A DNA stretch of 64,000 bases. Origin: Piromyces finnis finn. Its lineage: Eukaryota > Fungi > Neocallimastigomycota. The notes beneath the pieces are model-generated. The model made no database searches and had not been told where the DNA came from. It saw nothing but the letters and a program-made list of their open reading frames with translations. This document shows positions 4,169 to 58,700 of this stretch, piece after piece. Numbering within the stretch: the stretch's first letter is position 1; every line of letters begins with the position of its first letter. Position numbers and translations under genes: made by a program. The stretch covers positions 682,001 to 746,000 of the forward strand of contig MCFH01000020.1 in assembly GCA_002104945.1 (NCBI GenBank), given 5' to 3'.

Positions 4169-7100
4169 TTAATTACTACTTTGATTAAGAGATAAAGATG
4201 ACGATGTAGCAGAACTTGAATTTAATGAACCAGAACTAGAAAAGAGTTTCCATTTTTTTGATTCATTAGCCATGTCAGTATAAACAGCACATTCTGCTAA
4301 TAAATAGGCTTCCTTCATAATAAGTTCTTTATTTATTGGAGTACGCATTAAAAGAATAGAACGGTCAATACCTTGATATTGATTAGAAGCTTGTACAATT
4401 TCTCTTGCCTTGAGAAGTGCCTTTTGTTGTAAATCTTCAAAAGTTTCGGCAATTTCTTGTATGATACCCTTTTCTAATGCTTCTTCCATAGACATACCAT
4501 ATGAACCTGGTTGTAAATACATATCGAAACTGTTACCACGTTGAACGTAGGATTCCATATTAGCGGAAAGCATCATACCCGGACAAACACCTCTTGGTAA
4601 ATTACCAAAATCAATAGTAGAAGTTTTTAGAGCGACTCTCCAATCACAATTTAATGAAAGAGCTAAACCACCACCAACAATACGGCCGTTTAACATTCCA
4701 ATAACAGGTATCTTTAATTCAAGAATGGAAGCATAGTCACGATAAATTTCATAAACTTCTAATGCCATACGTAAATGTGTTTTTCCTTCAATATTGGCAA
4801 CCCAAGATGGATCAGCACCTGTACAAAAGTGTCTTCTATATCCACGTAAAATTACACATTTAATGTCCTTTCTATTTTTAAGGGTGTCTACGTGAGCATG
4901 AAGTTGACGAGAAACATCTAAATTCATACCATTATAATTTTGTGGAGAACAGATTTCAAGAACAGCAATACCTTCTTCAAGATCATAAAGCTTAACTAAT
5001 TCCTTACTATTATCCCAAGAAAGTTGATATTCTTCCATAGCACAACGAACCATAGTACTTTCCATCGATGGACTAGTTTCTTCTTCAGATTCACGAAGAT
5101 TTATAATATTAATTTGATTTGTAATAAATTTATCAAAAAGTATCTTAACTAAATTGTTGCATTGATCCTTAGTACTACAAACGAAATCTACTAAATTACA
5201 TTTCTTTGCTTCTTCTACTCGAATTGGTTCACCAAAAAGCATCATACGTTTAGCTGTAGTCTTAGAGAGCTTCTTTAAAGCTGCAACAGAAACTAAAGCA
5301 GGAATACCACCACGTCTAACTTCTGGAAAACCAAAACTAGCATCATCATAGGCAATAACATAGTCAGCCATTAATGGGAAAAGCATACTACCACCCCTAC
5401 AATTACCTTGGCATATAACAACAATTGGTTGAATAGCTTCTTCTAAACGTTTAACAAATTCACCATAATTCTTAATGGATTGTTCAAAAGCATCACTAGA
5501 AAAACCACCACTATTTAAATCCCATCCAGTAGAGAAATTCTTTCCATTACTTTCAATAAGAAGAATTTTGTTTGGATCATATGCCTTCATTAACTTTGTT
5601 AACATATCACCAGTAAAACTATTATTAGCTTCAGGACGGTTAAATACAACATGAACTACACGATCAGTACTTTCAATTATAATATCTGGTTTAGGAATAA
5701 TAGAAGATGGATCAACTGCTTTAGCTTTAGCAGCACTACTTGATGTAGCCTCAGAATCATTAGAATGGTGTGAATTTTTAGTCATTGGTACATTGACAAT
5801 TGGAGTTGGTGTCTTGACAACTGGAGTTGGTGTCTTGACAACTGGAGTTGGTGCCTTGACAATTGGAGTTGGTGTCTTGACAACTGGAGTTGGTGCCTTG
5901 ACAATTGGAGTTGGTGTCTTGACAACTGGAGTTGGTGCCTTGACAATTGGAGTTGGTGTCTTGACAACTGGAGTTGGTGCCTTGACAATTGGAGTTGGTG
6001 TCTTGACAATTGGAGTTGGTGCCTTGACAACTGGAGCTGGTGTCTTGACAATTGGGGTTGGTGCTTTGACAACTGGAGCTGGTGTCTTGACAACTGGGGT
6101 TGGTATCTTGACAACTGGGGTTGGTGTCTTGATAACTGGGGCTGGTGTCTTGACAACTGGAGTTGATACAAGTTTTTCTTCTAAATATGATTTAGCTATT
6201 GGAGTCTTAGTTCCAGATGAATCAAAGCTTAATTGAGCATTATTAACATTAATAACCTTTGGAACCTTCAAGACTTGATCTAATTTTTTATTCAAAACAT
6301 AATCTCCAGAGTCTAAATCTTTTATCTTGGGAGAAACAGTTACATTTTTCTTTGATGGTACTGGTTTTGGAGAAGGTGTGACCTTTCTTTCAACAGTTTC
6401 GGTAAGGTTTACTGGTGAGAAACTGACTGATGAATCTGAACTTCTTAAAGTAACATCTGCATCACTAGAAAGTTCAATTTCTTCTAATATTTTATCCTTT
6501 TCAAGACAAACCTTTCTTTCTGGATGAATACCAATCATATAAGTGTAGGTCTTACGAAGATCACGGTGATCCCATACATGTTTTGGCATTGGATAATCGA
6601 TACTACGAATCTTATCCAAAGTTTCACCATCAATACCATCCATGAAATCAATATAATATTGTCTCCAATTAAAGTTGTTGAAACATTTTTTAGCATACAT
6701 ATTTGCTATATTTCTACTTAAGCTATTATTATTATTTAACTTACGAGAAAGGGTATAGAAGATATTATCCTGATGGAAATCGTTACTCATATAGATACCT
6801 AAAACTGGTGTGGAACCAATTTCTAAAACTTTATCGATCTTTGAACGAGCAATCTTGGTTGCTTGGCTAAAGTTGACTGGACTAATGATATTTGTCCACC
6901 AATATTCTTCATCAAATGGACCTTGATATTCTCTGCCATAGGTAGAGGATATGAATGGAATCTTTGGTGCTTTAACTCTATTACCAATACCTTGGATACT
7001 TTGAAGGAATTTGTCCTTAGCTGTAATAATGTAGGAAGTATGGAAAGCCTTCTTTACCTTTAACATAACAGAAAAGACATTGTTCTTCCTGGCTTCAGCC

Positions 7101-10100
7101 ATAATTTCATTAAGTTGTTCAAGATCACCACCAAGAGTAATATCTTTTGGACTATTAATTGAAGCAATAAAAACCTTATCTTTACCCTTTAAGTAAATTG
7201 ATTGAGCTTCTTCAGAGCTACAACCAATAGCTAACATACCACTCTTTGCACCAGCATCAACTACATTTTCGCTTATTTGTCCATAGTTATAAAGTAAAAG
7301 AATAGCATCCTCAATAGTTAAAATACCAGCAGCATAAGCAGCAGCAACTTCACCCATACTATGACCAAAGACAAGAGCTGGTTCAACACCATAACGTTTC
7401 CATAGTTCAACTAGAGCTAATTCTATTATTCCAATAGCTGGGAATGAATACTGTGGATCTAAAAGTTTTTCTTCATTTACAGGACCCTTACCAAATAAGC
7501 CAGTCTCCTTTAAAAGATCTTTTTTAGAAATTTGGGTATGGATAGAATTGCAGTAATCAATAATACTTGCGAAATATGGGTTCATATTGTAAAGTTGAAG
7601 ACCCATTTCTGGATATTGAGTACCTTGACCTGAGAAGGTGAAGGCTACCTTTGGTTTAACAGAAATCTTATTATTATACTTGATAACATTGATATGATTA
7701 CGACCCTTTAAAATAATATCAACATAGTCATAGAATTTTGCTGGATCATCTAAAATAAAGGAAATACGATAATGACTGTCTTCTCTACAAGTATTTGAAA
7801 TATAAAGTTGTGGAAGAAGAGTTTCCATTGGAACCTTACGCCATTCTTCTAATTGTTGCATAACTAATTTTTCATTGTAACCAGAAATCTTGGCAACAAT
7901 TGGTTTGCCTTGAGAAATATTAAGTTGAATATCTTGTGGATTCAAATGTTTAACTTCTTCTAATAAAGCATTTGTGTTGGCACCACCAAAACCAAATGAG
8001 TTTACTGCAGCATGTAAGATATGAGGGGTATTCCAATCTTCTAATTTTTCACAAACTTTAATACCTAATTTTTCGGCATCAATAGCTTGATTAAGACGAT
8101 GATAGGCGGCCGTTGGTACTAATTTACGTTTATAAAGCATCATTGAAGTCTTAATAATGCTTACAATACCACTAGAATTTTCACCATGACCTGTATTACC
8201 CTTTACAGAACTAACTAATACAGGTGGGTCATTTGGACCACGAATACCCTTACCTCTACCATAAGCATCACCTATAGCATGGGATTCAATTGGATCACCA
8301 ACCTTTGTACCAGTACCATGGGCTTCAACATAATCAATTTGAGTTGGATTAATACCAGATTTCTCACAAACATGAGTTAATAACTTATATTGTGCTTCAT
8401 AGGAAGGCATAGTAAGAGATGGGGAACGACCGTCTTCATTACTACCACAACCAACAATTGCACAATAAATCTTATCACCATCACGAACAGCTTTCTCATA
8501 AGGTTTAACTAATATCATACCAGCACCTTCTAACTTTGCATAACCATCAGCTTTTTCATCAAATGGTTTACATGAACCATCTTTAGAAACAACACGAAGT
8601 TGAGAATAAGCTACAAAACTACCTGGGCAACTCATAAAGTTTGAACCAGCAACAATAGCCATTTCACAATCATCAGTAATCATAGCATTTAAACCGATGT
8701 TTAAAGCAGAGAATGCTGATGAACATGCAGTATTACAACTTATAGATGGTCCTTGGAAATCAAAGACATAAGACAAACGATTGGCTAAAATGGAAAGCTC
8801 AAAACCAGTAGGACTGTGTGAATTAATATCATTAGCATGAGAAATTTGGGTAACTAAGTAATCAATACCTGATGATCCAATAAAAACACCAGTACGAGAA
8901 CCCTTTAAAGTTTCTGGTTTGATATTTGCATCTTCAAGAGTTTCAACGGTTAACTCTAAGAGCCAGCGTTGTTCTGGTGACATTTCCTTAGCTTCTGGCA
9001 TGGAGATGTAAAAATATTTGTTATCGAAAAGATATGGATTCTCTAAGAAGGCACCACGTTTGGTTTGAATGGTTCCTTGAACAGGTTCTTTAGAATACCA
9101 TTCATCTTTATCCCATCTTTCCTTTGGAATATCTTTGGTAATGCATTTACCATCTTCCAACATTTTCCAGAAGGATTCCTTTGATTCAATACCTTCTGGG
9201 AAATGACAACCAATACCAATGACAGCAAATTTTGGTTGTTGATAACCAAAGTTTCTTTGATATTTCTTTTCATTGGTAGTGTTAGATAAATTAGAATTTT
9301 GTATTGGATTCTTCAATGGAGAATAATGTACCTTTGGTTGGTTTATTAATACTTCTGGGAATTGATAGATGGCTACACGACCGATAATTTTTAATGCACT
9401 ATCTATTTCATCTTTGGTTTTATTTGCTTGAACAGTGGTTAATATTTTATATTTATGTATAGCATCTCTTTCGCTAGATTCATATGATACATATAAACCT
9501 TGTTCCTGTAATGCTTTATGAAAAGCGATTCCTGCATCATCAGTTGGCATGAAAATTGGAATGGTTGCTGATTTTGAATGACTTGGAACGTCTAAACCTA
9601 TACCTTTTAAACCATTCTTCCATTGAAGAATATTTTTAAAAAGTTGATGGCGTCTAGTGATTCTACCAGAAGATAAATTCATTGGTTCTTCTAAACTACT
9701 ATAGCTAGCTAATAAAGCATTGGCAGTATTTGGTAAGATAACTTCTTTTTCATTTCTTTTAATAATACGATCCATAAATTCCTTTTGATTTTCACCATAT
9801 GCAATAAATCCACCATTTGATTCCATGATTCCTGAAAATGAACCTGTTATAAAATCAACTTGACCTTTTAATTTATAAAATTCAAGTATATTATTTGATG
9901 AACCATCAAAGAAACCACAACCAAATGTATCATCTATTACAACTATACATTGATAAGTTTGAGCTATTCTATTTATTTCTTTTAATTGACATATATCACC
10001 TTCGTTTACAAAAATACTTGATGAAGCAATGACTTTTTTACTTTTTGGGAATTTTTCATGAACTAATTTAACTTGTTTTTCTAAATTCTCTATAGCATTA

Positions 10101-10842
10101 GCGTGTGAATATGATAATGTTTTTGCTTTTGAAAATAAAACAGCATCTATTACATTTTTTGAACTTGAAGAATCATAAAATATATAATCCATTCTTGTTA
10201 CTAATGTGGTAAACAATGATATATTTGCAACATTGGCTATTGAATTAAAAACAATAAATTAAATTATTTCGTTGATTTTATGATAATGCCAATTATAATC
10301 ATGATAGTTTTTAAATATTATTTTATTATGTAAATATATATGATAGTTTTTAAATATTATTTTATTATAGTAAAACATAAGAAATATTAAAAATAAAGGA
10401 TAATCATGATAAATAAAGATATTATATATATATGTGTGTGTTGTGTGCGTGTGTGTATGTTATACAAATATAATAATATAAAAATACAATATAGTATTGT
10501 ATTTAATTATTGTTAATAAATAAAGGACTTTTTATTATTGGTATAAAAAATTTTATATTATATTACCGCCAGAAAATGTAGCAGCATATTGATATCCATA
10601 ATCTTTTGATAATTTTTGCTCCAATTGTATTTTTAATGGACATTGTATATCTGAATTTAAACCATATTTTTCAATAGCTTCTATAGCTGCTTTTTTAACT
10701 TTGTCAATTTTTCCAAATTCAAATGGTAAAGAAGAGCAAAAATTTAAAGTCTTCATATAATAAAAATTTTATTATTTGGTTATATATCTTTATATAAAAT
10801 ACTAATATATGATTGTTTATTAATACTTACTTTATTTGACAT
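4169..10842 (-). CDS. Type I PKS-like multidomain protein: degenerate PLP alpha-oxoamine synthase (AONS/SPT-like) - KS - AT - Pro/Thr repeat - crotonase - crotonase; about 2087 aa
   Basis: Exons 10842-10831 (MSNK; start less certain), 10750-10567 and 10236-4169, all GT-AG and in frame. AOS-like motifs: LNFCS, KAAIEAIEKYG, FSGANVAN, EGDICQL, DDTFG. KS at about 9230-7955 with NTACSS, EAHGTGT, GNTGHGE and NSFGFGG. AT at about 7650-6740 with FSGQG, GHSMG and AFH. Two crotonase folds: FNRPEANNSF...FSTGWDL...FGFPEV at about 5660-5180, and HFCTGAD...GGGLALSLNCDWR at about 4980-4280. Confidence 0.88.
5796..6164 (-). repeat. Coding minisatellite, 21-bp unit, 17 full copies plus a partial one, encoding K(T/A)P(T/A)P(V/I)V
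   Basis: acaa(c/t)tggagttggtg(t/c)cttg units on the plus strand, in frame within the PKS-like ORF. Confidence 0.97.
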
Positions 10843-12258
10843 GTTTGATATTTTCTATAGTAAAATCTATATTTCTCTTTAATTTATAATCTGATTCTTT
10901 TTATATCAAAATATAAGAATTTTATATGCAATAATGCAATAATAAATATACTTTAAATTATAAACAATATATATAAATTTTAATTATATTTTAAAATAAA
11001 ACTATTAAATTATTTCATATACAGAATATTATTACAACAATAATAATAATAATAATAATTTTTTAATTACCAGTAATATATTTAATTATAGTTATTTATA
11101 TAGTCTTTATGTATATGTATTTAATTCAAACAAAAAGACACAAATATCTATTTTTTCCTTATTAAAACAAGTTTTTATTGAAATTTGTTTTATATGTAAC
11201 AAATATATTCAATACAAGAAAATGTTTTTATTATAATAAAATAATATATGTTATTTCTTTTAATTTATGGTTTTGTATAATAAGATATAAAATATATTTT
11301 TTTTAAAAAAAAAAATATCAATTAAATTATGGAATCTATGACAAATTATTTATCTTTCCAAAAGAACTAAATTATGTATTAATATCTTTGAATTGATAAA
11401 AACAACCTATGTATGTTGTAATTATAATAAATAAGTTTTCTATTTCTACTTTTTTTGGAGGTATATGTAATTATGTAATTATTTATCTTATAAATAATAA
11501 TTTATCTTGTAAAAAAATAAAATCTATTTCCTGATAAATATTTTTTAACTTTTAAATAAAACAACATTCAAAATATTTTGAATTATAAATGTTTTGGAAA
11601 TATTTTATTTCTGAATGAACAGTTTATTCTTTGTTTTTATTTATTTATTTTGTTAATTTAATTATAATTTTTCCTTGATATAATAAATATATATTTTTTG
11701 TTTTTTGTTTTTTGTTTTTTTTTAATTTGATATTCAATGTCTGTTTTTATTTGTTTTTACTTATTTACTATTTTGTAGTTTAAAAATATATTCGTATTAC
11801 TCTCTTTTTATATTTTTTAATTTATTCCTTTATTTTTTTTTTTTTTTTTTTTTTTGTGAATATTCTTTAATACATTTTTATTATATAATTTTAATTAAAT
11901 TAATTATGAAATATATAGATTAAATATATGAGTTTTATATTAATGTATGAAGTATTTATGTTGAAAATTGTATATATTTTTTATTTTCATCATATATTAT
12001 TCAAGTAACTTTTAATATATATAATTATTTTATTTAGCATATATTATTTTGTATATAATTTATATTAAAAATTAAATAGTGAAGTTCAAAATAATTTTTA
12101 GTTTTTGGTTAAACAAAAAATATTAAAAAAAAAAAAATTTCCTTAAAATTTGAAATTATTACACTTAAATTTATTTGTTCATTCATTTAATTAATATATT
12201 AATTTATTTAGTTGTTTATTTATTTTTAGTAAACTATCATTAAATTAGTTATGTTTAC

Positions 12259-16262: not shown

Positions 16263-16925
16263 TTATTGAATTTGAATAAAACGAGTTTGATTTTTTTGAG
16301 TTTTAATTTTATTAATAATTATTTCTAGAACACCATTTTCCATTTTTGCTTGAATATTATCGATATTACCATCTTCTGGAATAGTAAATGATCTAGAAAA
16401 ACTACCATAGCAACATTCCATCATACTATATTTGTGATTATTATTACGATCATTAATTTCAGCTTCCATTCCATCATTTGTTGTTGTTGTTGTTGAAGCT
16501 TGTTCTTTTTCATTTTCTTGTCTTTCTTTTTTAGATTTTTCATCAGCATTATTTTTATAGATATTTTCTCTTTCTCCTGAAATTGTTAAAGTTCTTTCTT
16601 CATCAATTTCCATCTTAATTTTATCCTTAGTCATCCCTGGTAAATCGGCATGAATATAATAATTATTTTCATCTTCACTAAGATTCATTTTAGGTTCAAA
16701 ATCAGTTAAAAATTTAGTGTCATCATTAAATATTTTATTCAATTGTTTTTCTAAAGTATCATAGCCAAATGAATTTCTATATCTACGATGTCCACTACGA
16801 GTATAAAATGGTGTATTATAAGAAGAAACAGGAATCAAAGAGTCAAAGAAAGCATCATTATCGAAAGCATCGAATAATGAATTTTCAAATGAATGAATTG
16901 GTTGAGAATAAATATATAAAGACAT
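16263..16925 (-). CDS. hsp20: Small heat-shock protein (Hsp20 / alpha-crystallin domain), 220 aa
   Basis: FEPKMNLSEDENNYYIHADLPGMTKDKIKMEIDEERTLTISGER...YGSFSRSFTIPE...IQAKMENGVLEI; single exon. Confidence 0.95.
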   Translation of the reverse strand: MSLYIYSQPIHSFENSLFDAFDNDAFFDSLIPVSSYNTPFYTRSGHRRYRNSFGYDTLEKQLNKIFNDDTKFLTDFEPKMNLSEDENNYYIHADLPGMTKDKIKMEIDEERTLTISGERENIYKNNADEKSKKERQENEKEQASTTTTTNDGMEAEINDRNNNHKYSMMECCYGSFSRSFTIPEDGNIDNIQAKMENGVLEIIINKIKTQKNQTRFIQIQ

Positions 16926-28665: not shown

Positions 28666-30816
28666 ATGTATAATGGAAATATTACACATTCATTAGATAG
28701 AAATCATTCTCTATCACTTTTTTATTCAAGGAGAACACCTAGTAAAGCAAAGCCTATTAAAAAACAATCAAAATTTTTACTTCCTACTGGTGAAAATTTA
28801 TCACCAATAAAAGATAATGTTATTACACCATATAATTCAACGACAACACCAATACTAGTTCATTCATTAAGTGATATGTCATTAAAAAATGATACCAATC
28901 ATTTAGAACCAGATGATTCACCAACACCAGCAAGTCGTTATTCTATAATTAAACCAAATGTTGGAAAACAAAATATAAATAATAATAATCTTCAAGAAAA
29001 ATCCTTGCCTTTATATCCAAATAGTATTTCCCAAAAATTAAATAATAAATCAAATATAAACAATAAAGATGAAGATTTCCAAAATATGTTAACTCTACCA
29101 AAATTTCAAAGAAGAACAGCACGTATGGCAGTAGTAGTATCAGAGAGAAAACCAGTAAATCTATTTACTAACCAGTTAAAAGAGGAAAAAAATAAAATAA
29201 ATAATACATTAGAATTAAAAAATGAAATTTCTAATAATGAAAAGAGTAAAATGAATTTAGATGAACAAAATACAAATTTAGATAATTGTCCTCATTCAGA
29301 AGGTTTTTTAAATAGTGATGGTATATGGGAAGATCCCACACTTTCTCAAAGTGAATCAAGGTGCCTTCAAACAACTATGGTAGACAATATTATGAAAACA
29401 AATGAAAATTATGAATCAGTAATAGACAAAAATAATAATGATAAAATGTTGATGTGGGATTTTGAAGAAGACAATAAATTCAATGATAAGGAAAATATTA
29501 TACCCGACGATTATAAAGGTGGAATATTAGCAGAACGTGAATGGTGTGACCTTGGAAATGATGATGATTCCATAATGGAAGAGTACGATGATCTTTCAAA
29601 ATCAACATTACAAAAAGGTAAAAAACAAAGTAATGGTATGATTAAAAAAAGTGAAAATCAGCATGTGAGATATGCATTTCAAGAGATATCTATTAATTCC
29701 ATGCCAGAATATCAAATGAACTCTACAGATTGTTATAGTGTATACTCTAACAGTAGTTTTGGAAGTGCCTGTGATTCTCAATTCATGAATACTCCAAAGA
29801 AATATTTTGGTAGTTATAAAATGAACAATTCCTTCTCAAATAGTTTAACCAATAATAGTAATATAGATAATAATGATTCTACTCCATCATTCTTCAATAC
29901 ATTACCTCTCAAAACAATGAAAGTTAACGCTTCATCATCTTCTACAAACCCAAAAAAAATAATGAATACAAAAAAAATAGTGTATCAACTTTGTGGAGTA
30001 CCTGACATAAATGCGGTTCATAAGCGCTCTATAGCAAAATCAAAAGGAAACATTAAAATAGAAAAAAAAGGTTTAGAAATTGATAATCCATCCTTTATGA
30101 ATTCTTCACCAATAATATCAAAATCTTCTATACTATCACCATCACTTTTACTATCTTCACCTTTCGTAAGAAATGGTTTTTCATCGCCATTGGTTCAAAC
30201 GAATACTAATTATTATATTAACCCCCCAAGAAGAAAAAAAATACATTTAGGAGATAATCAGAATAATGAACTAATTACCGAAAAAGATACCATAAGTACT
30301 TTAGTGCATCAAGATATTGAAGATGATACAACCCCAAAACCACCTAAAGTTAAATCCTTATTATCTTCTTCATTTGATAATAATAATTTATCTTCTTCAG
30401 AATGTAAGTCAGTACCTGTAGCTGAAAAAATAGCATCAAAGGAAAATTTAAAAATTTTAGAGTCCTCACAAACAAATGAAAAAGAAGAAGAAACTGTATT
30501 TTTCCCTCACTATCATTCAAAATATCATAACCAAGCAAATGATAAGAAGTTAGATATTGAAGAAAAGATAATTGCAGATGAGACTTTTCTTTCTCAAACC
30601 AGTAGTATGATGAGTATTAGTCCTTCAACACTTTCAAAAATTAATGAAACTCATCAAAGTTTCCTTCAATTGAACCAAAATCTTGATATTGTAGCAGAGG
30701 AAGCTTCAGCCAATACTTCTATCAATCTACCCAGAAGAAATAGAATATCCGTTGAAGACAAAAAGAAAGAATTATTAAGTAGAAGAAAATCAAGAATAAA
30801 GAAATACGTTTTTTAA
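28666..30816 (+). CDS. Hypothetical low-complexity (N/S/K/E-rich), probably disordered protein, 716 aa
   Basis: Uninterrupted 2.15-kb ORF with coding-like GC in AT-only surroundings; basic C-terminus KKKELLSRRKSRIKK; no recognised domain. Confidence 0.8.
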   Translation: MYNGNITHSLDRNHSLSLFYSRRTPSKAKPIKKQSKFLLPTGENLSPIKDNVITPYNSTTTPILVHSLSDMSLKNDTNHLEPDDSPTPASRYSIIKPNVGKQNINNNNLQEKSLPLYPNSISQKLNNKSNINNKDEDFQNMLTLPKFQRRTARMAVVVSERKPVNLFTNQLKEEKNKINNTLELKNEISNNEKSKMNLDEQNTNLDNCPHSEGFLNSDGIWEDPTLSQSESRCLQTTMVDNIMKTNENYESVIDKNNNDKMLMWDFEEDNKFNDKENIIPDDYKGGILAEREWCDLGNDDDSIMEEYDDLSKSTLQKGKKQSNGMIKKSENQHVRYAFQEISINSMPEYQMNSTDCYSVYSNSSFGSACDSQFMNTPKKYFGSYKMNNSFSNSLTNNSNIDNNDSTPSFFNTLPLKTMKVNASSSSTNPKKIMNTKKIVYQLCGVPDINAVHKRSIAKSKGNIKIEKKGLEIDNPSFMNSSPIISKSSILSPSLLLSSPFVRNGFSSPLVQTNTNYYINPPRRKKIHLGDNQNNELITEKDTISTLVHQDIEDDTTPKPPKVKSLLSSSFDNNNLSSSECKSVPVAEKIASKENLKILESSQTNEKEEETVFFPHYHSKYHNQANDKKLDIEEKIIADETFLSQTSSMMSISPSTLSKINETHQSFLQLNQNLDIVAEEASANTSINLPRRNRISVEDKKKELLSRRKSRIKKYVF

Positions 30817-34516: not shown

Positions 34517-35908
34517 ATGAAATTTAGTACTGTTTTAGCTTCTTCTATTTTAGCTGCAGGAGCTTTAGCCTCCTCTTGTCACCCAAGTTACCCATGTTGT
34601 AACGGTTGTGATGTTACCTACGTTGATAACGAAGGTGAATGGGGTGTTCAAAACAACAACTGGTGTTTCATCGACAGTGGTAAGTGTCATCCATCTAGTT
34701 GTAAATTCGAAGCTCTTGGTTACAGTTGCTGTTCCAACTGTGGACCAGTTTACTTCACTGATTCTGATGGTAAGTGGGGTGTTGAAAACGGTAACTGGTG
34801 TGGTATTCCAGATAACTGTGGTAACAGTGGTTCTAGAACCACTACTAGAACTACCACTAGAACCACCACCACTAGAACCACTACTACCAGAAAGACTTAC
34901 CCAACTGTTACTCCATCTTTCTTCAGTAGTGGTAACATTTACAGTAATGGTCAATACCAAAATGAAGTCCAATCATCTGTCAATAAATTAAGTGGTAATT
35001 TACAACAACAAGCTTCTAGAGTTAAGTACACTCCAACTGCTGTTTGGTTAGCTTGGTACGGTGCTCCAGGAGAAGTTAGTGGTCACCTTGGTGCTGCTGG
35101 TGGTAACACTGCAGTCTTCATGATGTACTGGATTCCAACTCGTGATTGTAACAGTAACGCTTCTCAAGGTGGTGCTAGTGACTTAAACGCTTACAAGAAC
35201 TACGTTGACAGTGTTTACAATTCCTTCAGATCTCACTCCAACAGCAAGATTGTTGTTGTTGTTGAACCAGATACTCTTGGTAACATGGTTACTTCTCAAG
35301 GTAACGAAAACTGCAGAAGAACTGCTGTTATTCACAAGGAAGCTCTTGCTTACTGTATTAACAAGTTCGGTAGTCTTAACAATGTCCAAGTTTACCTCGA
35401 TGCTGGTCACAGTGCTTGGTTAACTGGTTACGAAGATGAAACTGCCGAAATCATTAAGGAAATCTTAGATATGGCTCCACAAGGTAAGATTCGTGGTTTC
35501 TCTACCAACGTTTCTAACTTCCAACCAATTGAAAAGGAATATGCTTACCATACTAGACTTTACGATGCTCTTGAAAAGGTCGGTGTTAAGAACATGAGAT
35601 TCATTATGGATACTTCTCGTAATGGTGTTGATATTAGTGAAGCTTTTGCTAAGACTAAGACTTGGTGTAACCTTGTTGGTACTGGTTTTGGTGAACGTCC
35701 AAAGGGTAACCCAGATACCGTTAACATGCCATTATTAGATGCTTACATGTGGTTAAAGCCACCAGCAGAATCTGATGGTTCTTCTCAAGGTTCTCGTGCT
35801 GATCCAGTTTGTGCTCGTTCCGACTCTCTTCCAGGTGCTCCAGAAGCTGGTTCCTGGTTCCACGATTACTTTGTTCAATTATTAAAGAACGCTAACCCAC
35901 AATTTTAA
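34517..35908 (+). CDS. celA: Cellulosomal GH6 cellulase (CelA-like): signal peptide, two N-terminal dockerins, Thr/Arg linker, GH6 domain; 463 aa, intronless
   Basis: Two YPCC/YSCC...WGV.N.NWC dockerins; RTTTRTTT linker; GH6 motifs IPTRDC, VEPDTLGNMVT, YLDAGH, GFSTNVSN, DTSRNG, WCN, DAYMWLKPPAESDG and APEAGSWFHDYFVQLLKNANP. Confidence 0.95.
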   Translation: MKFSTVLASSILAAGALASSCHPSYPCCNGCDVTYVDNEGEWGVQNNNWCFIDSGKCHPSSCKFEALGYSCCSNCGPVYFTDSDGKWGVENGNWCGIPDNCGNSGSRTTTRTTTRTTTTRTTTTRKTYPTVTPSFFSSGNIYSNGQYQNEVQSSVNKLSGNLQQQASRVKYTPTAVWLAWYGAPGEVSGHLGAAGGNTAVFMMYWIPTRDCNSNASQGGASDLNAYKNYVDSVYNSFRSHSNSKIVVVVEPDTLGNMVTSQGNENCRRTAVIHKEALAYCINKFGSLNNVQVYLDAGHSAWLTGYEDETAEIIKEILDMAPQGKIRGFSTNVSNFQPIEKEYAYHTRLYDALEKVGVKNMRFIMDTSRNGVDISEAFAKTKTWCNLVGTGFGERPKGNPDTVNMPLLDAYMWLKPPAESDGSSQGSRADPVCARSDSLPGAPEAGSWFHDYFVQLLKNANPQF

Positions 35909-37207: not shown

Positions 37208-40200
37208 ATGTCAGTCCTTTATATTAAAGATAAGAATTATATCAGACGTGGTACCCGGTCTTATGGTATCCCCTTAGATGATATTCGCTCCTTCTTTATC
37301 CGTGGTATTCGATCATGGTCAGTAAATATGCTATGGGAAAAACTCGAGGTTATTCTAGAAGATAAATTTAATTCAGTTATTAGTGTTAAATATTTTCAGA
37401 CTTTCAATGATCACTTTTTCTTAGTCAAGGTTCATGGTTCATCAAAAGATTGTATTAAAATCTTACACATGTTAAAGAAGAAACTTTCAGTTACCTCAAT
37501 TTCCTTTTCAGCTCGTAGTAGAAGGAATCACAAATACACTTTTTCCACACTCAAACGTAAAATTTTAGTTTCTAATAAACATCAACATTCTATTCAACAA
37601 TCATTTCAACAATCAGTTCAACAATCTCATCAACAATCCGATCTTCAACAAGATCTTCAACAAGATCTTCAACAAGTTTCCCATCATGAAAATATTCCAG
37701 ATCTACAGCAAACACAATTTCAATCTCAACATTCAACAATTAATTCTAATAGTTCTATCAACTCTGATAACAGTTCAATAGTTGATAGTTCTTCAGTTTC
37801 ACAGCCATCTAGTAATAGTTCTACTTATTCCTCTGATGCATCATCCATTAATAATGATGACTTTAATAATAATAATAATAGCAACGATTCTTCCTCATCC
37901 TCATCCAACAAGCCTGATAACTTTTCTTTTTGTCTTAGTTGGAACACCAATGGGTGGAATCACGAAAAGAGAGATAGTATTAGCTATTTCACAGCTATTT
38001 TCAAACCATTATTTTTATGTTTCCAAGAAACTGGTAATGGTTCTGGATCGAATACAGATTATCCTTGTCGTGTTACTTTGCGAAACTATAGACACTTTTT
38101 CAAGAAAGCTGACGAATCAGTTCCTGGAATGAGAGGTTTATATTTAGGTTTTCACAATTCGTGTCAAGCCTCACTTGAAAACTTCTCTGGAAAGTATATT
38201 ATTTCTATTTATACTTTTAGTCTTTGGAATAGATTCAAATGCTCGATTGGAAATGTTTATATGTCTCATAGTCATCACAACATCTATGTTGATCATGCAA
38301 AGTTAGAAGTTCGCTTGTGGTTACAAACTCATTCATCCCATCCATCGATTCTTGTTGGTGATTTTAATATGTCTAAAGTTAAATTATTCAACTGGTTATC
38401 AACTAATGGATTAGGAGATTGGGAAATTCTTCCGCTTAGAGGGTCGACTATCTCTTGGACTCGAGGTGATCAATCTTCCGACATTGACCATGTTCTTATC
38501 AATTTGAAGATGAAAGATCTTATTCACTCAGGATCATTTATAAATAATTTTTATCCTGTATCAGACCATAAGCCACTTCTTATTAATGGTAAAATTATTC
38601 CTATGGAAGATTTTTCTAATGACTTTAATGTTCCTAAGAAAATTCTGAAATGGAATAGATTAAAATGTATTGAGGAAAAGGAATCTATTCTCAGTCATAA
38701 TAAATTCCAAATACTTTCAGCCAAATTCAACGATCCTAATGTTTCTACAGATGAACTTTCCAAAGAGTTTACTTCAACTGCTTTTTCAATTGCAGACGAG
38801 CTCAGTATTACTTCAGCAAATAATGTTATAAAGTCTTCATTTCATATTTCACAACAAATTTTTAATCTTCAAAAAATCAAAATGAAGTTGTATAAGAGAT
38901 TTAAAAAAGAAAGAATTTATGATATAGATGAATTTATTAAAAGAATTAAAATCTACCGTAAGCTCATTGATTACATCCACAAAAGATGTAATGAATTTAG
39001 GAAGCAAGAATATCTTCATTGGATTAAATCAGGATGTGAGTATATGAAGAGTCATAATCCTAAGAAGGCCTGGAAATGGATCAAGAAAACTGCAAAAATT
39101 GGAAAAGATTCTTTCTTTATTGCTCAACCAATTAAAAATAAAAATGGAGAATTAGTTGTTGCTACGGAAGAACAACTTGAAGTGTGGCATGATCATTTCG
39201 AAAACCTTGCATCAGATCCAAGTGGTGTAAGTCTTGATTTGGAGCATTGGTATGAAGAACCAACGAATAAACGTTTTTCACTTCCTATGCTTGATGAGTG
39301 GGATATCAACCAAGATATTAGTATTGATGAAGTCAAGTCAGCTATCCTCTCTACTCCAAATTATAAAGCATCAGGTCCGGATGGTATTCCAATTGAATTT
39401 TACAAAGCATTAATTCCATCAAGTAATGATTCTAATAATGCTACAGGTAATAATTCTTCCGGTAATACCACTTCAGATAATGATGCTCATGGTTTAAATT
39501 TTATTCTTAAATTATTCAACCGTATTTGGGATGGAGACTTCCCCAACTCATGGAATGAATCCAGTATTGTTTCTATTCCTAAGAAGGGAGATTTGACAGA
39601 TTGTGATAACTATCGAGGTATATCACTTATCAATAATGGTATTAAGTTGATTTCCAAAATTGTCACCACTAGAATCTCAGAATATGGTCTAAAGAATAAT
39701 TTCATTAGACCTGAACAATTTGGTTTTCGAAAAAAGGAAGAAAGTATCAGTCTTTTCATTTCAATCCAAGAAATATGCCGTAGACGTCAATTAGATAATA
39801 AAGAGACATATTTGGCCTTTTTAGATCTCAGGAAAGCATACGATTCAGTCCCAATCGGTAATATTCTCCATAAATTAGATTGTTTAGGAATCCGAGGTAA
39901 GAGTTTACAATTCATCAAAAATTTATATTTAACATCTAAGGCTAATGTCAAATTAGATGGACAATTCTCGAAATCTTTTGATGTGAAGAAAGGAGTCCGT
40001 CAAGGTTGCCCTCTTTCTCCTATTCTCTTTAATCTCTTTATTAATGATATTTTTAAAGAGTGCGAAGATCTTGGAGTCAGTTTAGGTGACACTCGATGCT
40101 GTGGTGGACTTTTTGCAGATGATATAGTTATTTGTGCTCCAACAAGAGGATGCTTAAAAAAGATGCTAAGAAGAGTTAATGAATGGGCCTTGTATAATGA

Positions 40201-41230
40201 AATGGAATTTGGTATCCAGAAATGTTCAACGATGGTGATTCGTCCTGAATCAATAGAAAATCAGATCAAGAGAGATCCAACATTTTACTTAGCAGGACAA
40301 CCCATTCCAACTACTGATTGTTATACTTATCTTGGTGTTCCATTTGATAAGAATCTGTCCCTTAAACCAGTAATTAAAGCTCTTAATAACAAGGTTTTGA
40401 AAGGACTTTTTTCAGTCAGTAAATTCTTAAGAAATCCTAATATTCCTATTCCCTTCAAAAAGCTAGTACTTAACTCACAAGTGATTAGCAGAGTTTCATA
40501 CTTTGCACCATTACTTGGATCCAACAAAGCTAGGTCTAGAATTGCTCAGAAGCATGTTAACAAAGGAATACGATGGGTTGCCGGAGTTCATAAAGTTATA
40601 TCGTTTATATCTTTATACTCTATCTCAAAAGATTTGAATATTCCTCCATTGTCAGCCAAATGTGCGTTAGCTCAGGTTAGATGTTTTAACAAATGGAAAA
40701 ACTCAAATTGTATTATCTCATACCTTGTCAATTACATTCCTAAATTTAGAAAATACACGTGGTGCAAATCAAGTAGGACACTTGATAAAAAACTAAAGAA
40801 GCATGGAGATGTTAAAGCAGTTAAAAACTTTTATTGGAAAGATCTCAAAAGGAATTCAATCAAAGCGCAATATTATGATGATAATAAATTTATTGAAACT
40901 AAAGATTTTATTAAATTATGTTATGAGTACCCAGAGTTTGCCTATGGCTTCTACTGGCTCTTGAAAGCAAGAAGCGGATACAAGTTGGATGCTAGAGTTG
41001 CCAAAGCTGCTAAATTTGTTGATCCAGTTTGTCCTAACTACTGTCCATGTTGTGAGAGTGGAGATCAAAGAATAATAATGAAAATGTTAATATCAGTAGA
41101 GATAGCAATAACATTAACAGTAATAGTAACAATAATAATAATAACAATAGTAGTAGTAGAAATAGTAATAATAATAATAGTAATAATATTAGTAATATTA
41201 GCATTAGTGAAGATAATAATTCTAATTTAG
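37208..41230 (+). CDS. LINE ORF: N-terminal extension, APE endonuclease, reverse transcriptase; frameshifted or deleted near the C-terminal zinc knuckle
   Basis: APE motifs SWNTNG, FQETG, GDFN, DIDHVL and SDHKP. RT motifs KASGPDGIP, PKKGD...NYRGISL, QFGFR, FLDLRKAYDSV, GVRQGCPLSPILF, LFADD and YTYLGV. CPNYCPCC is followed by out-of-frame low-complexity sequence. Confidence 0.95.
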   Translation: MSVLYIKDKNYIRRGTRSYGIPLDDIRSFFIRGIRSWSVNMLWEKLEVILEDKFNSVISVKYFQTFNDHFFLVKVHGSSKDCIKILHMLKKKLSVTSISFSARSRRNHKYTFSTLKRKILVSNKHQHSIQQSFQQSVQQSHQQSDLQQDLQQDLQQVSHHENIPDLQQTQFQSQHSTINSNSSINSDNSSIVDSSSVSQPSSNSSTYSSDASSINNDDFNNNNNSNDSSSSSSNKPDNFSFCLSWNTNGWNHEKRDSISYFTAIFKPLFLCFQETGNGSGSNTDYPCRVTLRNYRHFFKKADESVPGMRGLYLGFHNSCQASLENFSGKYIISIYTFSLWNRFKCSIGNVYMSHSHHNIYVDHAKLEVRLWLQTHSSHPSILVGDFNMSKVKLFNWLSTNGLGDWEILPLRGSTISWTRGDQSSDIDHVLINLKMKDLIHSGSFINNFYPVSDHKPLLINGKIIPMEDFSNDFNVPKKILKWNRLKCIEEKESILSHNKFQILSAKFNDPNVSTDELSKEFTSTAFSIADELSITSANNVIKSSFHISQQIFNLQKIKMKLYKRFKKERIYDIDEFIKRIKIYRKLIDYIHKRCNEFRKQEYLHWIKSGCEYMKSHNPKKAWKWIKKTAKIGKDSFFIAQPIKNKNGELVVATEEQLEVWHDHFENLASDPSGVSLDLEHWYEEPTNKRFSLPMLDEWDINQDISIDEVKSAILSTPNYKASGPDGIPIEFYKALIPSSNDSNNATGNNSSGNTTSDNDAHGLNFILKLFNRIWDGDFPNSWNESSIVSIPKKGDLTDCDNYRGISLINNGIKLISKIVTTRISEYGLKNNFIRPEQFGFRKKEESISLFISIQEICRRRQLDNKETYLAFLDLRKAYDSVPIGNILHKLDCLGIRGKSLQFIKNLYLTSKANVKLDGQFSKSFDVKKGVRQGCPLSPILFNLFINDIFKECEDLGVSLGDTRCCGGLFADDIVICAPTRGCLKKMLRRVNEWALYNEMEFGIQKCSTMVIRPESIENQIKRDPTFYLAGQPIPTTDCYTYLGVPFDKNLSLKPVIKALNNKVLKGLFSVSKFLRNPNIPIPFKKLVLNSQVISRVSYFAPLLGSNKARSRIAQKHVNKGIRWVAGVHKVISFISLYSISKDLNIPPLSAKCALAQVRCFNKWKNSNCIISYLVNYIPKFRKYTWCKSSRTLDKKLKKHGDVKAVKNFYWKDLKRNSIKAQYYDDNKFIETKDFIKLCYEYPEFAYGFYWLLKARSGYKLDARVAKAAKFVDPVCPNYCPCCESGDQRIIMKMLISVEIAITLTVIVTIIIITIVVVEIVIIIIVIILVILALVKIIILI

Positions 41231-55753: not shown

Positions 55754-58700
55754 ATGTTGGGATTTTCCAATAATCAACAACAAAATATCCAGGATAGAAA
55801 TAATATGCAACAAATGCCCATGCTTCCAGTACCAATGAATCAACAAATGCCAATGAACAATATGCAACGAAATGGTCCTATTCCACAAAATAATATGAAT
55901 GTTATGTTAAATCAATCTGGAGCTAACAATAACAACAATACTATTTCAAATAACAATAATAATATGAGTATGGGAACCCCAATGAATGCTAATACCAATA
56001 ATAATATTAATCCATCTTCTTTAGATGTTAATAATATGAATACCTCAACGAATCATCAAAATCAAAACATGGGAAATGATGGTTTATATGGTAATGGTGG
56101 TGGCATATATTCTTACCCTGTATCTATGATGAATTCTAATTCAAACAATAATTATTATCAATACAATAATATGAATAATTTTTCTATCTATCAACAACAA
56201 CCACCTCTGCAATCACAAACACAACAAATTCCACAACAAGCACTATCACAACAAAATCAACCTTATTTTATGCCGCAACTATCTCAACAAAATTCTTCTG
56301 AATCACAAACTTCTTCACAAAATGCTTCCCAATCTCAACCTAATCATCAAGGAAATATAATTCAAACAGGGATTTCAAATCAACAATCATCTATGATAAA
56401 TTCTGGTATTTCTATTCCATCAGATTCTTCTCTACAACAACAGTCACAACCTTCATTCTATTCTAATCCATCTTCCTTTTTAATGAATATATCCAATAAT
56501 CATTCTAATAGCCAAAGTATTAGTAATCAACATCAAAATAACTTAATAGGAAATAATAATGGTAATTTTGTTTCAGGAAACTCTGGTAATTCACTATCTT
56601 GTAATAATAGCAATATGAATATGAATTATAATTCAACAAATGGTTACTCTCCATTTAATACAAATTTATATGCAAATTTTAATGGTGGTTTTAATAGTAC
56701 TAATTCTTCTTTAAACAATTCAAATTCCTATACAGTAAATAATATTAATAATACAAATGATATGTCAACCACAGTTGTTAATAATAACAACACTGCTGTT
56801 AATTCAACAGTGATTGGCTCTAATACAAATAATAATACTCCATCAAATATGATAAATACAAATAACACAAATAATATAACAGATAATAACAATGGTAATC
56901 TTAATACTAATTTATTTAATGGCTATCATCCAATCAATACAAACCATCCAATGAATATGAATAATAGTAATATGAATGTAAATACCCATAATAATATGAA
57001 CAATAATGGCAGTAACCAAATTAATAGCAATTCCATTAATACTCCATTTGTGAATTCTATTAATTCTCAATTGAATCCAAATGCTGCTGCATTTACGCTT
57101 TCTACTCCATCTAATAATGAACGTAATATTAGTGAGATCACCAAAGAATCTCTTCTCACTAAAAAAGCAAGTGTTACTTTTTCGCAAACTTCTGTTGAAG
57201 CTTCTCTTTCCCAAAATAACGAATTAAAAAATCTTAGAGATGTTAATATTCAAGGTCAAAACCAAACCAAACCTGAAATATCTGAATTAAAAGATAATGT
57301 CACAAATGAAGCAAAAGAGATTAAAGATACACCATCCTTAAATGACCTTTCTGAATCTATTTCTAGAAAGGATAGTATTAGTGTCGGATCAAGTATTAGT
57401 GAAAATATTTCTTCACATGATACACCAACAGTTTCTTCGATTGATAGTAAACACTATACTTCATCAAACTTTATTGGTAATTCGAGCTATGGAGGATTAA
57501 CCACAACAAATTCTATAGGAAATAACAATGGATCTATTAATACTTCAAATATGTTAACTTCACATTCATCATTTAGTAATTTTAATATTTCCATGAATAA
57601 TGGTCGTAACAGTATGCAAAACTCTACTCATAATAATTTCAATATAAGTGGAAATAATAGTAATAATAGAAATAATAGTAATATGTCTTGTTTTAATGGT
57701 ATGATGTCTATGCCAATTATACCTCCTAATGGAGGCAACAGTATGATAAATAATAGCCATCTTATAGGAACAGGGTCTGTATTTTCTAGTAATAATCAAT
57801 GGTCGAATACTATGGATAATTCTAATCGTATGAATTTACCAATGAATTCAGCAGGAGGAAACAATAATGGAAACAATAATGGCTTAAATTCTGGTCTTGG
57901 AAGCAATAATATGAAACTTATGATGAATGGAAATGGCATAAGTAGTAATATAAATTCATTTTCCATGACATCTGGTCCAAATGGTATAGGAAGTTGGGAC
58001 TGGAATAGTAACTTTTCTTATAATAATGGATTTTATGATGGAGGAAATGGCTTAAGCAAATTTAATAGTAATAATAATGACTTTTATCATAGCGGGGACA
58101 ATCGTAATTTAAAGAATGGTCAACAAAATAATATTAATTTAATATCTAGTCTTACAAATGGAATTAATAATATGAATTTAAATACTGGTTCTGGTTTCAA
58201 TATACTCTCCAACAATAATAACAACTTACTATCGAATACTCTTGGTAAGGGTCGTATTAATAATGGCCTTGGAATTACTACCAACCCTATAACTATCAAC
58301 ACCAACAATACTCATCATGTTATAGGCCCAACGTCAGCAAAGAGTCAAGATAACGGGTTAGATTCGGTTCTTACGGGAAAGAAAATTGAAGTAGAAAATG
58401 AAGAATTATACGATATAAAGGAAAGCAATAGTACAATTATAAATGGAAATAATGTATCTAATACCCTCCCAACTTCTGCATCAAATGGAAGTTTGTTAAG
58501 TGTTAAGATGAGTAAAGAAGACTTAATATTGAATAGTAAAGAGTTTGTGCCAAGTATAAAACATGATTTAATACTAACAAAAGATTTATCTACATTAGCA
58601 TTAGGTCGTGATAAGATTTTTAGTAGTAATACATCATCCTTGAAACCATCACCAAATCTTACGAGTGTTAATAATGAAGCAAGAATGGGTTTTGGTATTA

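Follow-up and report, generated by a model that had tools for sequence, protein, structure and literature searches.

The 64,000-nucleotide stretch of Piromyces finnis DNA analysed here (contig MCFH01000020.1, positions 682,001 to 746,000; hereafter the window, with coordinates counted from its first letter) encodes on its minus strand a polyketide synthase (PKS)-like protein that begins with a dead pyridoxal 5'-phosphate (PLP) enzyme. The N-terminal ~360 residues of this protein are homologous to alpha-oxoamine synthases (AONS), and they have lost the Schiff-base Lys together with other catalytic residues and the substrate loop. The loss is old and common to all orthologues found and to a paralogous family, and the domain is nevertheless transcribed, correctly spliced, confidently folded in models, flexibly tethered to the ketosynthase (KS) domain that follows it and maintained by purifying selection.

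Homology, fold and catalytic losses

Pfam recognised the domain on exon 3 alone (PF00155, E 8.5e-13). When phmmer was run against all solved structures, bacterial serine palmitoyltransferase (SPT) came first (3a2b/8guh, Sphingobacterium multivorum, E 2.8e-23), followed by KBL, BioF and ALAS. Scores were 86 bits to bacterial SPT (full length), 77 to KBL and about 40 to LCB1 or LCB2 (partial), the LCB1/SPTLC1 chains reaching 26-40 bits over query residues 8-145 only; orthology to LCB1 is ruled out by this ranking. The SPT, KBL and BioF models of NCBIfam matched at E 1e-35 to 1e-27, with scores far below the equivalog cut-offs (121 bits at best vs 640 for SPT of the CFB type, 112 vs 460 for KBL), and identity to bacterial SPT/KBL is 25-30%. 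In a tree of the domain, very long stems (6.3 and 8.9 changes per site) lead to the family studied here and to a second, paralogous gut-fungal family (see below), both of which fall on the same side of a branch (SH-aLRT 85) and to one side of the sampled bacterial SPTs; because of long-branch attraction and a biased bacterial sample, this tree does not place the donor lineage.

For fold predictions the complete domain was taken from the intronless orthologues P0003 and P0243, the exons of the window being searched separately. AlphaFold2 modelled the complete orthologous domain (P0003:1-385, 47-row alignment) with a mean pLDDT of 88.6 and a pTM of 0.86. Foldseek aligned this model to SPT, KBL, BioF and ALAS at TM 0.78-0.83, with 0.81-0.83 for SPT/KBL (0.81 to 3a2b, 0.82 to the KBL 3tqx) and 0.78 for SPTLC1. 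In a two-domain model (P0243:1-860), both domains were predicted at ~90 pLDDT, the linker between them (369-397) fell below 50 and the pTM was 0.56. Because of these linker and pTM values, the AONS-like head would not be rigidly packed on the KS and, at least in this monomer model, behaves as a folded bead on a flexible tether of ~30 residues.

We compared seven catalytic columns in a 47-row alignment that includes 41 bacterial relatives. All 41 carry Lys, His, Asp, His, Thr, Ser and Arg at these columns; the window has Gly, Ser, Asp, Phe, Ser, Ser and Leu. In S. multivorum SPT, Lys244 forms the internal aldimine, His138 stacks on the ring and anchors the carboxylate, Asp210 binds N1, His213 binds O3', and the PLP phosphate is held by Thr241 and Ser243 plus Ser273* and Ala274* of the other subunit (PMC10196870). 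In the window, the motif at the former Lys reads GSFSGIMESNGG (GSFSG) and pairs with GTFSKSLASLGG (GTFSK) of Sphingobacterium SPT, the region of the stacking His reads YDSSSSKNVIDA (DSSSSKN) and aligns to DERDHASIIDG, and DDTF pairs with DDAHS (Asp210/His213). The N1 Asp is kept in all fungal sequences aligned. On the phosphate side, Ser stands at both the Thr241 and the Ser243 positions, and a Thr-Ala falls on Ser273*/Ala274* in the HMMER alignment only, MAFFT aligning this NTA differently; where HND is expected, the translation has SHANA. Exon 2 is affected as well: SNxYLGL has degenerated to SSLPFEF, and a 6-7-residue deletion falls exactly at AGSRFLN, which corresponds to Ala79-Asn85, a loop that includes the position of SPTLC1 Cys133 and enters the active site of the neighbouring subunit (PMC10196870). 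The N-terminal arm is also gone, the alignments showing none of the ~45 residues that stand-alone enzymes carry before the SNxYLGL strand. An earlier reading of this DNA from sequence alone (the sequence-only reading) had called the domain a pseudo-enzyme on the basis of the Lys-to-Gly change, DDTF for DEAH, SSKN for NHAS and HAN for HND. All of these are found where it had placed them, and both His, the Arg and the substrate loop are lost in addition to the Lys. PLP-dependent Claisen chemistry by this domain can be excluded with high confidence: it is a true pseudo-enzyme domain.

Behind the head, the protein continues with a KS, an acyltransferase (AT) and two crotonase (ECH) domains (Pfam on exon-3 residues: Aminotran_1_2 3-282, KS 337-711, AT 865-1154, ECH 1524-1697 and 1757-1887). 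No PP-binding (acyl carrier protein, ACP) domain was matched anywhere in the protein, including between AT and ECH, by Pfam at E up to 10. The AONS-KS linker is predicted to be disordered, yet short motifs in it (FPEVL..QP, N-Y-x-P-x-x-N-P-I-K) are kept even in the paralogous family; the linker may be a short linear docking motif.

Expression, selection and age of the loss

The gene is transcribed, and spliced as 10842-10831, 10750-10567 and 10236-4169. Two studies with three public runs yielded transcript-like contigs that are 100% identical to the window (0 differing letters) and cover 8966-10236; this agreement between the runs rules out an assembly error at the Gly codon. The intronless full-length orthologue P0243 begins with the same Met-Ser-Asn-Lys-Thr-Leu-Asn-Phe-Cys as the window from exon 1 onward, and is 86% identical to exon 3 over its first 860 residues.

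A region-restricted search recovered three full-length relatives with the same architecture, two of which show the same exon structure in their DNA, the third being an intronless transcript-like contig. Apparent frameshifts at two loci (L002 and L003) proved to be an artefact of prokaryote-style gene calls, which take the first Met downstream of the intron as their start. The nearest protein cluster includes a Piromyces sp. E2 fragment; Neocallimastix californiae, N. lanati and N. 'constans' come next. In the three relatives the Lys is replaced by Gly, Gly and Asn, and the stacking His and the O3' His are lost in all three; counting the window, the former Lys site reads G, G, G and N in four orthologous lineages (Piromyces, Neocallimastix and one lineage that is 49% identical).

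To measure selection, dN/dS (omega) was calculated by the Nei-Gojobori method among the three closer lineages (dS 0.45-0.85, 1000 bootstrap replicates). The AONS-like domain gave 0.17-0.23, with an upper 95% bound of 0.35 or less and 0/1000 replicates reaching 1, and its exon-2 part gave 0.19-0.33. Values were 0.02-0.055 in the KS, 0.11-0.18 in the AT, 0.04-0.14 in the ECH domains, 0.17-0.46 in the AONS-KS linker and 0.49-0.78 in a low-complexity linker of the same protein. Purifying selection on the AONS-like domain is clear, if relaxed, and these per-domain values with their bootstrap rule out neutral decay. Within the domain, the motifs DFITGSFS and ESNGGFI do not vary between orthologues whose overall identity is 50%. 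Sequencing error and private decay are ruled out too, the three runs being identical and the orthologues and paralogues all being without the Lys. As to the question, raised by the sequence-only reading, whether orthologues keep the K-to-G change under purifying selection, selection (omega ~0.2) and the loss of Lys hold throughout, and one lineage has Asn in place of Gly. Neutral dN/dS, orthologues with an intact Lys and sequencing error, which the same reading had named as grounds for refutation, were each looked for and none was found.

A search with KS-AT uncovered the second gut-fungal family, of 3460-3600 residues, in which AONS-like-KS-AT-DH-ER-KR-ECH-ECH-HMG-CoA synthase (HMGS) are joined in one chain, again with no PP-binding match (Pfam, E up to 10). 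In its AONS-like domain, the Schiff-base Lys is replaced by Tyr and the stacking His by Lys, DESH and HSYLGL are kept, Glu stands at the Ser243 position and the trans segment differs; across the families, the former Lys site drifts between G, N and Y. Between the two families KS-AT is 46% identical (vs ~32% to bacterial PKSs) and the AONS-like domain 24-26%, which argues that the fusion of the AONS-like domain in front of the KS predates their split; the Lys loss probably predates it as well. Within the reach of these searches, the family is restricted to anaerobic gut fungi. The paralogous protein resembles a reducing PKS to which a complete beta-branching cassette has been fused, and in the annotation of Neocallimastix 'constans' it is split into two gene models.

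Possible roles of the head and known counterparts

An intact fold that selection keeps points to a non-catalytic purpose. By analogy with its relatives, the head is probably, although by no means certainly, kept as a non-catalytic dimerising or docking unit. In AONS enzymes dimerisation is obligatory, and each of the three domains takes part in the interface (PMC6148460). The N-terminal ~360 residues, a homologue of the bacterial SPT/KBL type that is no longer able to do PLP chemistry, would form an autonomous head that dimerises or docks as AONS folds do; tied to the KS-AT-ECH-ECH body by its flexible linker of ~30 residues, this head would help to assemble or organise a homodimeric megaenzyme. 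Two heads would be held together in a KS-dimerised PKS, and a homodimer is therefore favoured. The suggestion of a retained scaffold, made in the sequence-only reading, gains support from a loss that is ancient and common to the orthologues and the paralogous family, at an omega of ~0.2. Several observations nevertheless weigh against a dimerising or docking unit. The head has only about half of the N-terminal domain, which in bacterial SPT contributes to dimerisation; the KS dimerises by itself, and an additional dimerising head is not obviously needed; and rigid packing on the KS is made less likely by the low pTM of the monomer model with two domains. In addition, conservation is strongest on elements of the former cofactor pocket (DFITGSFS, ESNGGFI, IDD, NTA), and the head may accordingly still bind a ligand instead of serving as a mere scaffold.

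Such a ligand would be acyl-CoA, the phosphopantetheine arm of a trans-ACP or non-covalent PLP, held in the dead pocket or in the old acyl-thioester tunnel, and the head would then present or gate a starter for an ACP-less megaenzyme. We regard this as unlikely, though deserving of attention: in neither family is a PP-binding domain found, the N1 Asp and the Ser residues at the Thr241 and Ser243 positions are kept, the two pocket motifs are invariant at 50% overall orthologue identity, and solved relatives bind acyl-CoA or acyl-ACP (e.g. 8dle, BioF-ACP; 7u7h). The invariant Thr-Ala lies on Ser273*/Ala274* in the HMMER alignment, and the phosphate cup may thus survive (PMC10196870). However, with Glu at Ser243 and another trans segment in the paralogous family the cup is not family-wide, the NTA motif is placed differently by MAFFT, and the conserved motifs double as core strands of the fold. 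A more specific version, in which the head supplies the carrier interface that an ACP-less, PKS-like machine for beta-branching otherwise lacks, a PLP enzyme turned into a substrate-delivery domain that feeds the KS, is a decidedly long shot. The same low likelihood attaches to its structural premise, that the phosphate cup and thioester tunnel of the SPT ancestor were kept and hold acyl-CoA or the phosphopantetheine arm of a trans-ACP. If true, such a head would be common to two gut-fungal megaenzyme families (KS-AT-ECH-ECH and KS-AT-DH-ER-KR-ECH-ECH-HMGS).

PLP-fold pseudo-enzymes are rare, and the textbook case is LCB1, a separate protein with an N-terminal membrane anchor and an obligate LCB2 partner, which keeps the interface loop (Cys133 region) that completes the site of this partner. 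Like the window domain, LCB1/SPTLC1 belongs to the AONS family and is retained although its Schiff-base Lys and further catalytic residues are gone; it is also without the N1 Asp (PMC6148460). In contrast, the window domain is soluble, fused to a PKS, keeps the Asp, has the loop deleted and shows only ~40 bits of partial similarity to LCB1; no hydrophobic or membrane segment is found at the N-terminus of the window protein, which starts four residues before the LNFCSS strand. Because the domain is distant from LCB1, soluble, PKS-fused, with the Asp kept and the loop deleted, its Lys loss is independent of that in LCB1. The label 'LCB1-like' that it had received thus describes an analogy (Lys-less and retained) and not a kinship (scores, kept Asp, no anchor, deleted loop).

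The accompanying proposal, that the head docks onto a partner with the active half-site, is unsupported. It would have the dead domain and a separate Lys-bearing AONS protein form one composite active site docked to KS-AT, for which LCB1, Lys-less and active only with LCB2, is the precedent (PMC6148460), and with which selection on the domain and the possibly kept trans Thr-Ala are consistent. Yet the domain is not an LCB1 relative and has no membrane anchor, the Ala79-Asn85 loop that a pseudo-subunit would lend its partner is deleted (PMC10196870), and two copies side by side in a KS dimer favour homodimerisation. Moreover, no Lys-bearing AONS partner, ACP, HMGS or other biosynthetic gene lies beside the PKS-like gene within the 64-kb window. 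Altogether, such a heterodimer is highly improbable.

We see just as little probability in an idle domain, in which selection would keep nothing but foldability so that the N-terminus of a needed enzyme stays unaggregated. An omega ~4 times that of the KS, very long tree stems and a former Lys site that varies freely (G, N, Y) would fit such a relic; its full length is however kept in two paralogous families and several genera at omega ~0.2, while the linker of the same protein drifts at 0.5-0.8 and changes freely in length, and its N-terminal position would have made deletion easy. That the domain still catalyses a residual or unorthodox reaction, binding PLP without a covalent bond or through a different Lys, is barely credible. 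In favour are the retained Asp, the Ser residues on the phosphate side and the only alternative Lys by alignment, Lys26, which directly follows the lost His in 3/4 orthologues (the paralogue having Lys at the His position itself). This Lys is Ala in the 49% orthologue, however, none of the Schiff-base Lys, the two His and the Arg remains, the domain has neither the substrate loop nor the N-terminal arm, and NCBIfam scores are far below every equivalog cut-off.

In sequence and fold, the closest known systems are bacterial SPT/KBL (S. multivorum SPT 3a2b/8guh; Bacteroidota SPTs), which share the three-domain fold-type I architecture, the N1 Asp and the GG turn. These are stand-alone homodimers with Lys244, His138, His213, the Arg, the Ala79-Asn85 loop and an N-terminal arm of 45-80 residues, whereas the window domain has lost these elements and is fused in front of a KS. 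AONS chain-release domains of PKSs and nonribosomal peptide synthetases (SxtA and RedL/PigH type) are catalytic, have the Lys and stand C-terminally after an ACP, where they off-load by Claisen condensation; the window domain is N-terminal, Lys-less and part of a protein without ACP. Former enzyme folds kept as structural elements are also known from animal fatty acid synthase (pseudo-KR and pseudo-methyltransferase). Those are internal, rigidly packed and of unrelated folds; the window domain is likewise a former enzyme in a synthase, but a terminal PLP fold on a flexible tether. With the release domains, and with PKS-derived sphingolipid systems (PMC12134224), it has in common an AONS fold covalently joined to, or working with, polyketide machinery.

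Full-text literature searches turned up no PKS with an N-terminal AONS domain devoid of the Lys. Swift et al. 2021 (PMC8106346), the main paper on natural-product genes of gut fungi, is silent on the domain, and its main text and supplements make no mention of aminotransferase, ECH or oxoamine for these PKSs. In public genomes the orthologues are deposited only as 'ketoacyl-synt-domain-containing protein'. The domain represents an independent second Lys loss in the AONS family, at the N-terminus of a PKS where catalytic AONS domains are normally C-terminal. Knowing that the head is non-catalytic prevents the mis-annotation of such genes as amino-acid-incorporating PKSs, and a non-catalytic head directs experiments to the assembly or loading of an ACP-less PKS-like enzyme.

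Gene features and neighbourhood

Table 1. Features of the PKS-like gene, its neighbours in the window and the paralogous family.
Feature	Coordinates	Strand	Evidence or remark
Whole PKS-like gene	10842-4169	-	Three coding exons; intron phases and joints from sequence and transcript contigs
5' untranslated region (UTR), at least 109 nt	10843..10951	-	Transcript contig X1 extends to 10951
Exon 1, Met-Ser-Asn-Lys	10831..10842	-	ATG 10842-10840; sequence; joint 10750/10831 in spliced contigs of 3 runs
Intron 1, 80 nt	10751..10830	-	GT..AG on minus strand (CT..AC on plus); joint 10750/10831 in contigs X1-X3
Exon 2, first 61 residues of AONS-like domain	10567..10750	-	Phase 1; translation, alignments
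Intron 2, 330 nt	10237..10566	-	GT..AG, phase 1; joint 10236/10567 in contigs X1-X3
Exon 3, coding	10236-4169	-	Stop codon 4171-4169; sequence, translation
AONS-like part in exon 3, ~300 residues	9335..10236	-	Large and C-terminal domains, fold-type I PLP fold; Pfam, phmmer vs PDB, AlphaFold2/Foldseek on orthologues
Ser (TCA) at PLP-stacking, carboxylate-anchoring His (SmSPT His138)	10160..10162	-	Sequence, phmmer, 47-row alignment
Asp-Asp-Thr-Phe	9923..9934	-	N1-binding Asp kept (9934-9932), Phe for O3' His (9925-9923); sequence, phmmer, 47-row alignment
Gly (GGA) at Schiff-base Lys (SmSPT Lys244)	9830..9832	-	Sequence, phmmer alignment, 47-row alignment
Leu (TTA) at Arg binding the amino-acid carboxylate	9440..9442	-	phmmer and alignments; Arg in 41/41 bacterial relatives
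Linker from AONS-like domain to KS	9227..9334	-	AlphaFold2, alignments, omega
KS domain	8102..9226	-	Cys/His/His motifs present; Pfam, translation
AT domain	6773..7642	-	GHSMGE motif; Pfam, translation
21-bp tandem repeat, 17.8 copies, 88% matches	5793..6165	-	Encodes Pro-rich TPxPVVK linker between AT and ECH; TRF
Two crotonase (ECH) domains	4265..5665	-	Pfam and NCBIfam
HSP20 small heat-shock protein	16263-16925	-
GH6 cellulase with two CBM10/dockerin modules	34517-35908	+
Paralogous family members	P0138, P0143, P0257; L004:2331-12779; L005:6001-15711

Upstream of the coding exons, a 120-nt intron probably lies in the 5' UTR at ~10951-11070 (GT 11070-11069, AG 10952-10951); contig X1 stops at 10951, and its loose end matches ~11072-11101, adjoining the GT donor. 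The linker from AT to ECH turns over rapidly, since its counterparts in the orthologues are low-complexity sequences unrelated to it (e.g. Ser-rich repeats in L003). The open reading frames (ORFs) at 5782-6171 (-) and 5793-6236 (+) are by-products of the 21-bp repeat.

The window is extremely AT-rich (14-34% G+C), and the neighbours of the PKS-like gene within it are HSP20, GH6-CBM10, a LINE element, Argonaute and GH45. A 716-aa ORF at 28666-30816 (+) is without a Pfam match at E 0.001. The LINE-type retrotransposon ORF (37208-41230, +) is intact-looking and encodes 1340 aa with endonuclease and reverse transcriptase. The Argonaute (ArgoN, PAZ, Mid, Piwi) is encoded by a single 1976-aa ORF at 55754-61684 (+), with ~1000 residues before its first Pfam domain.

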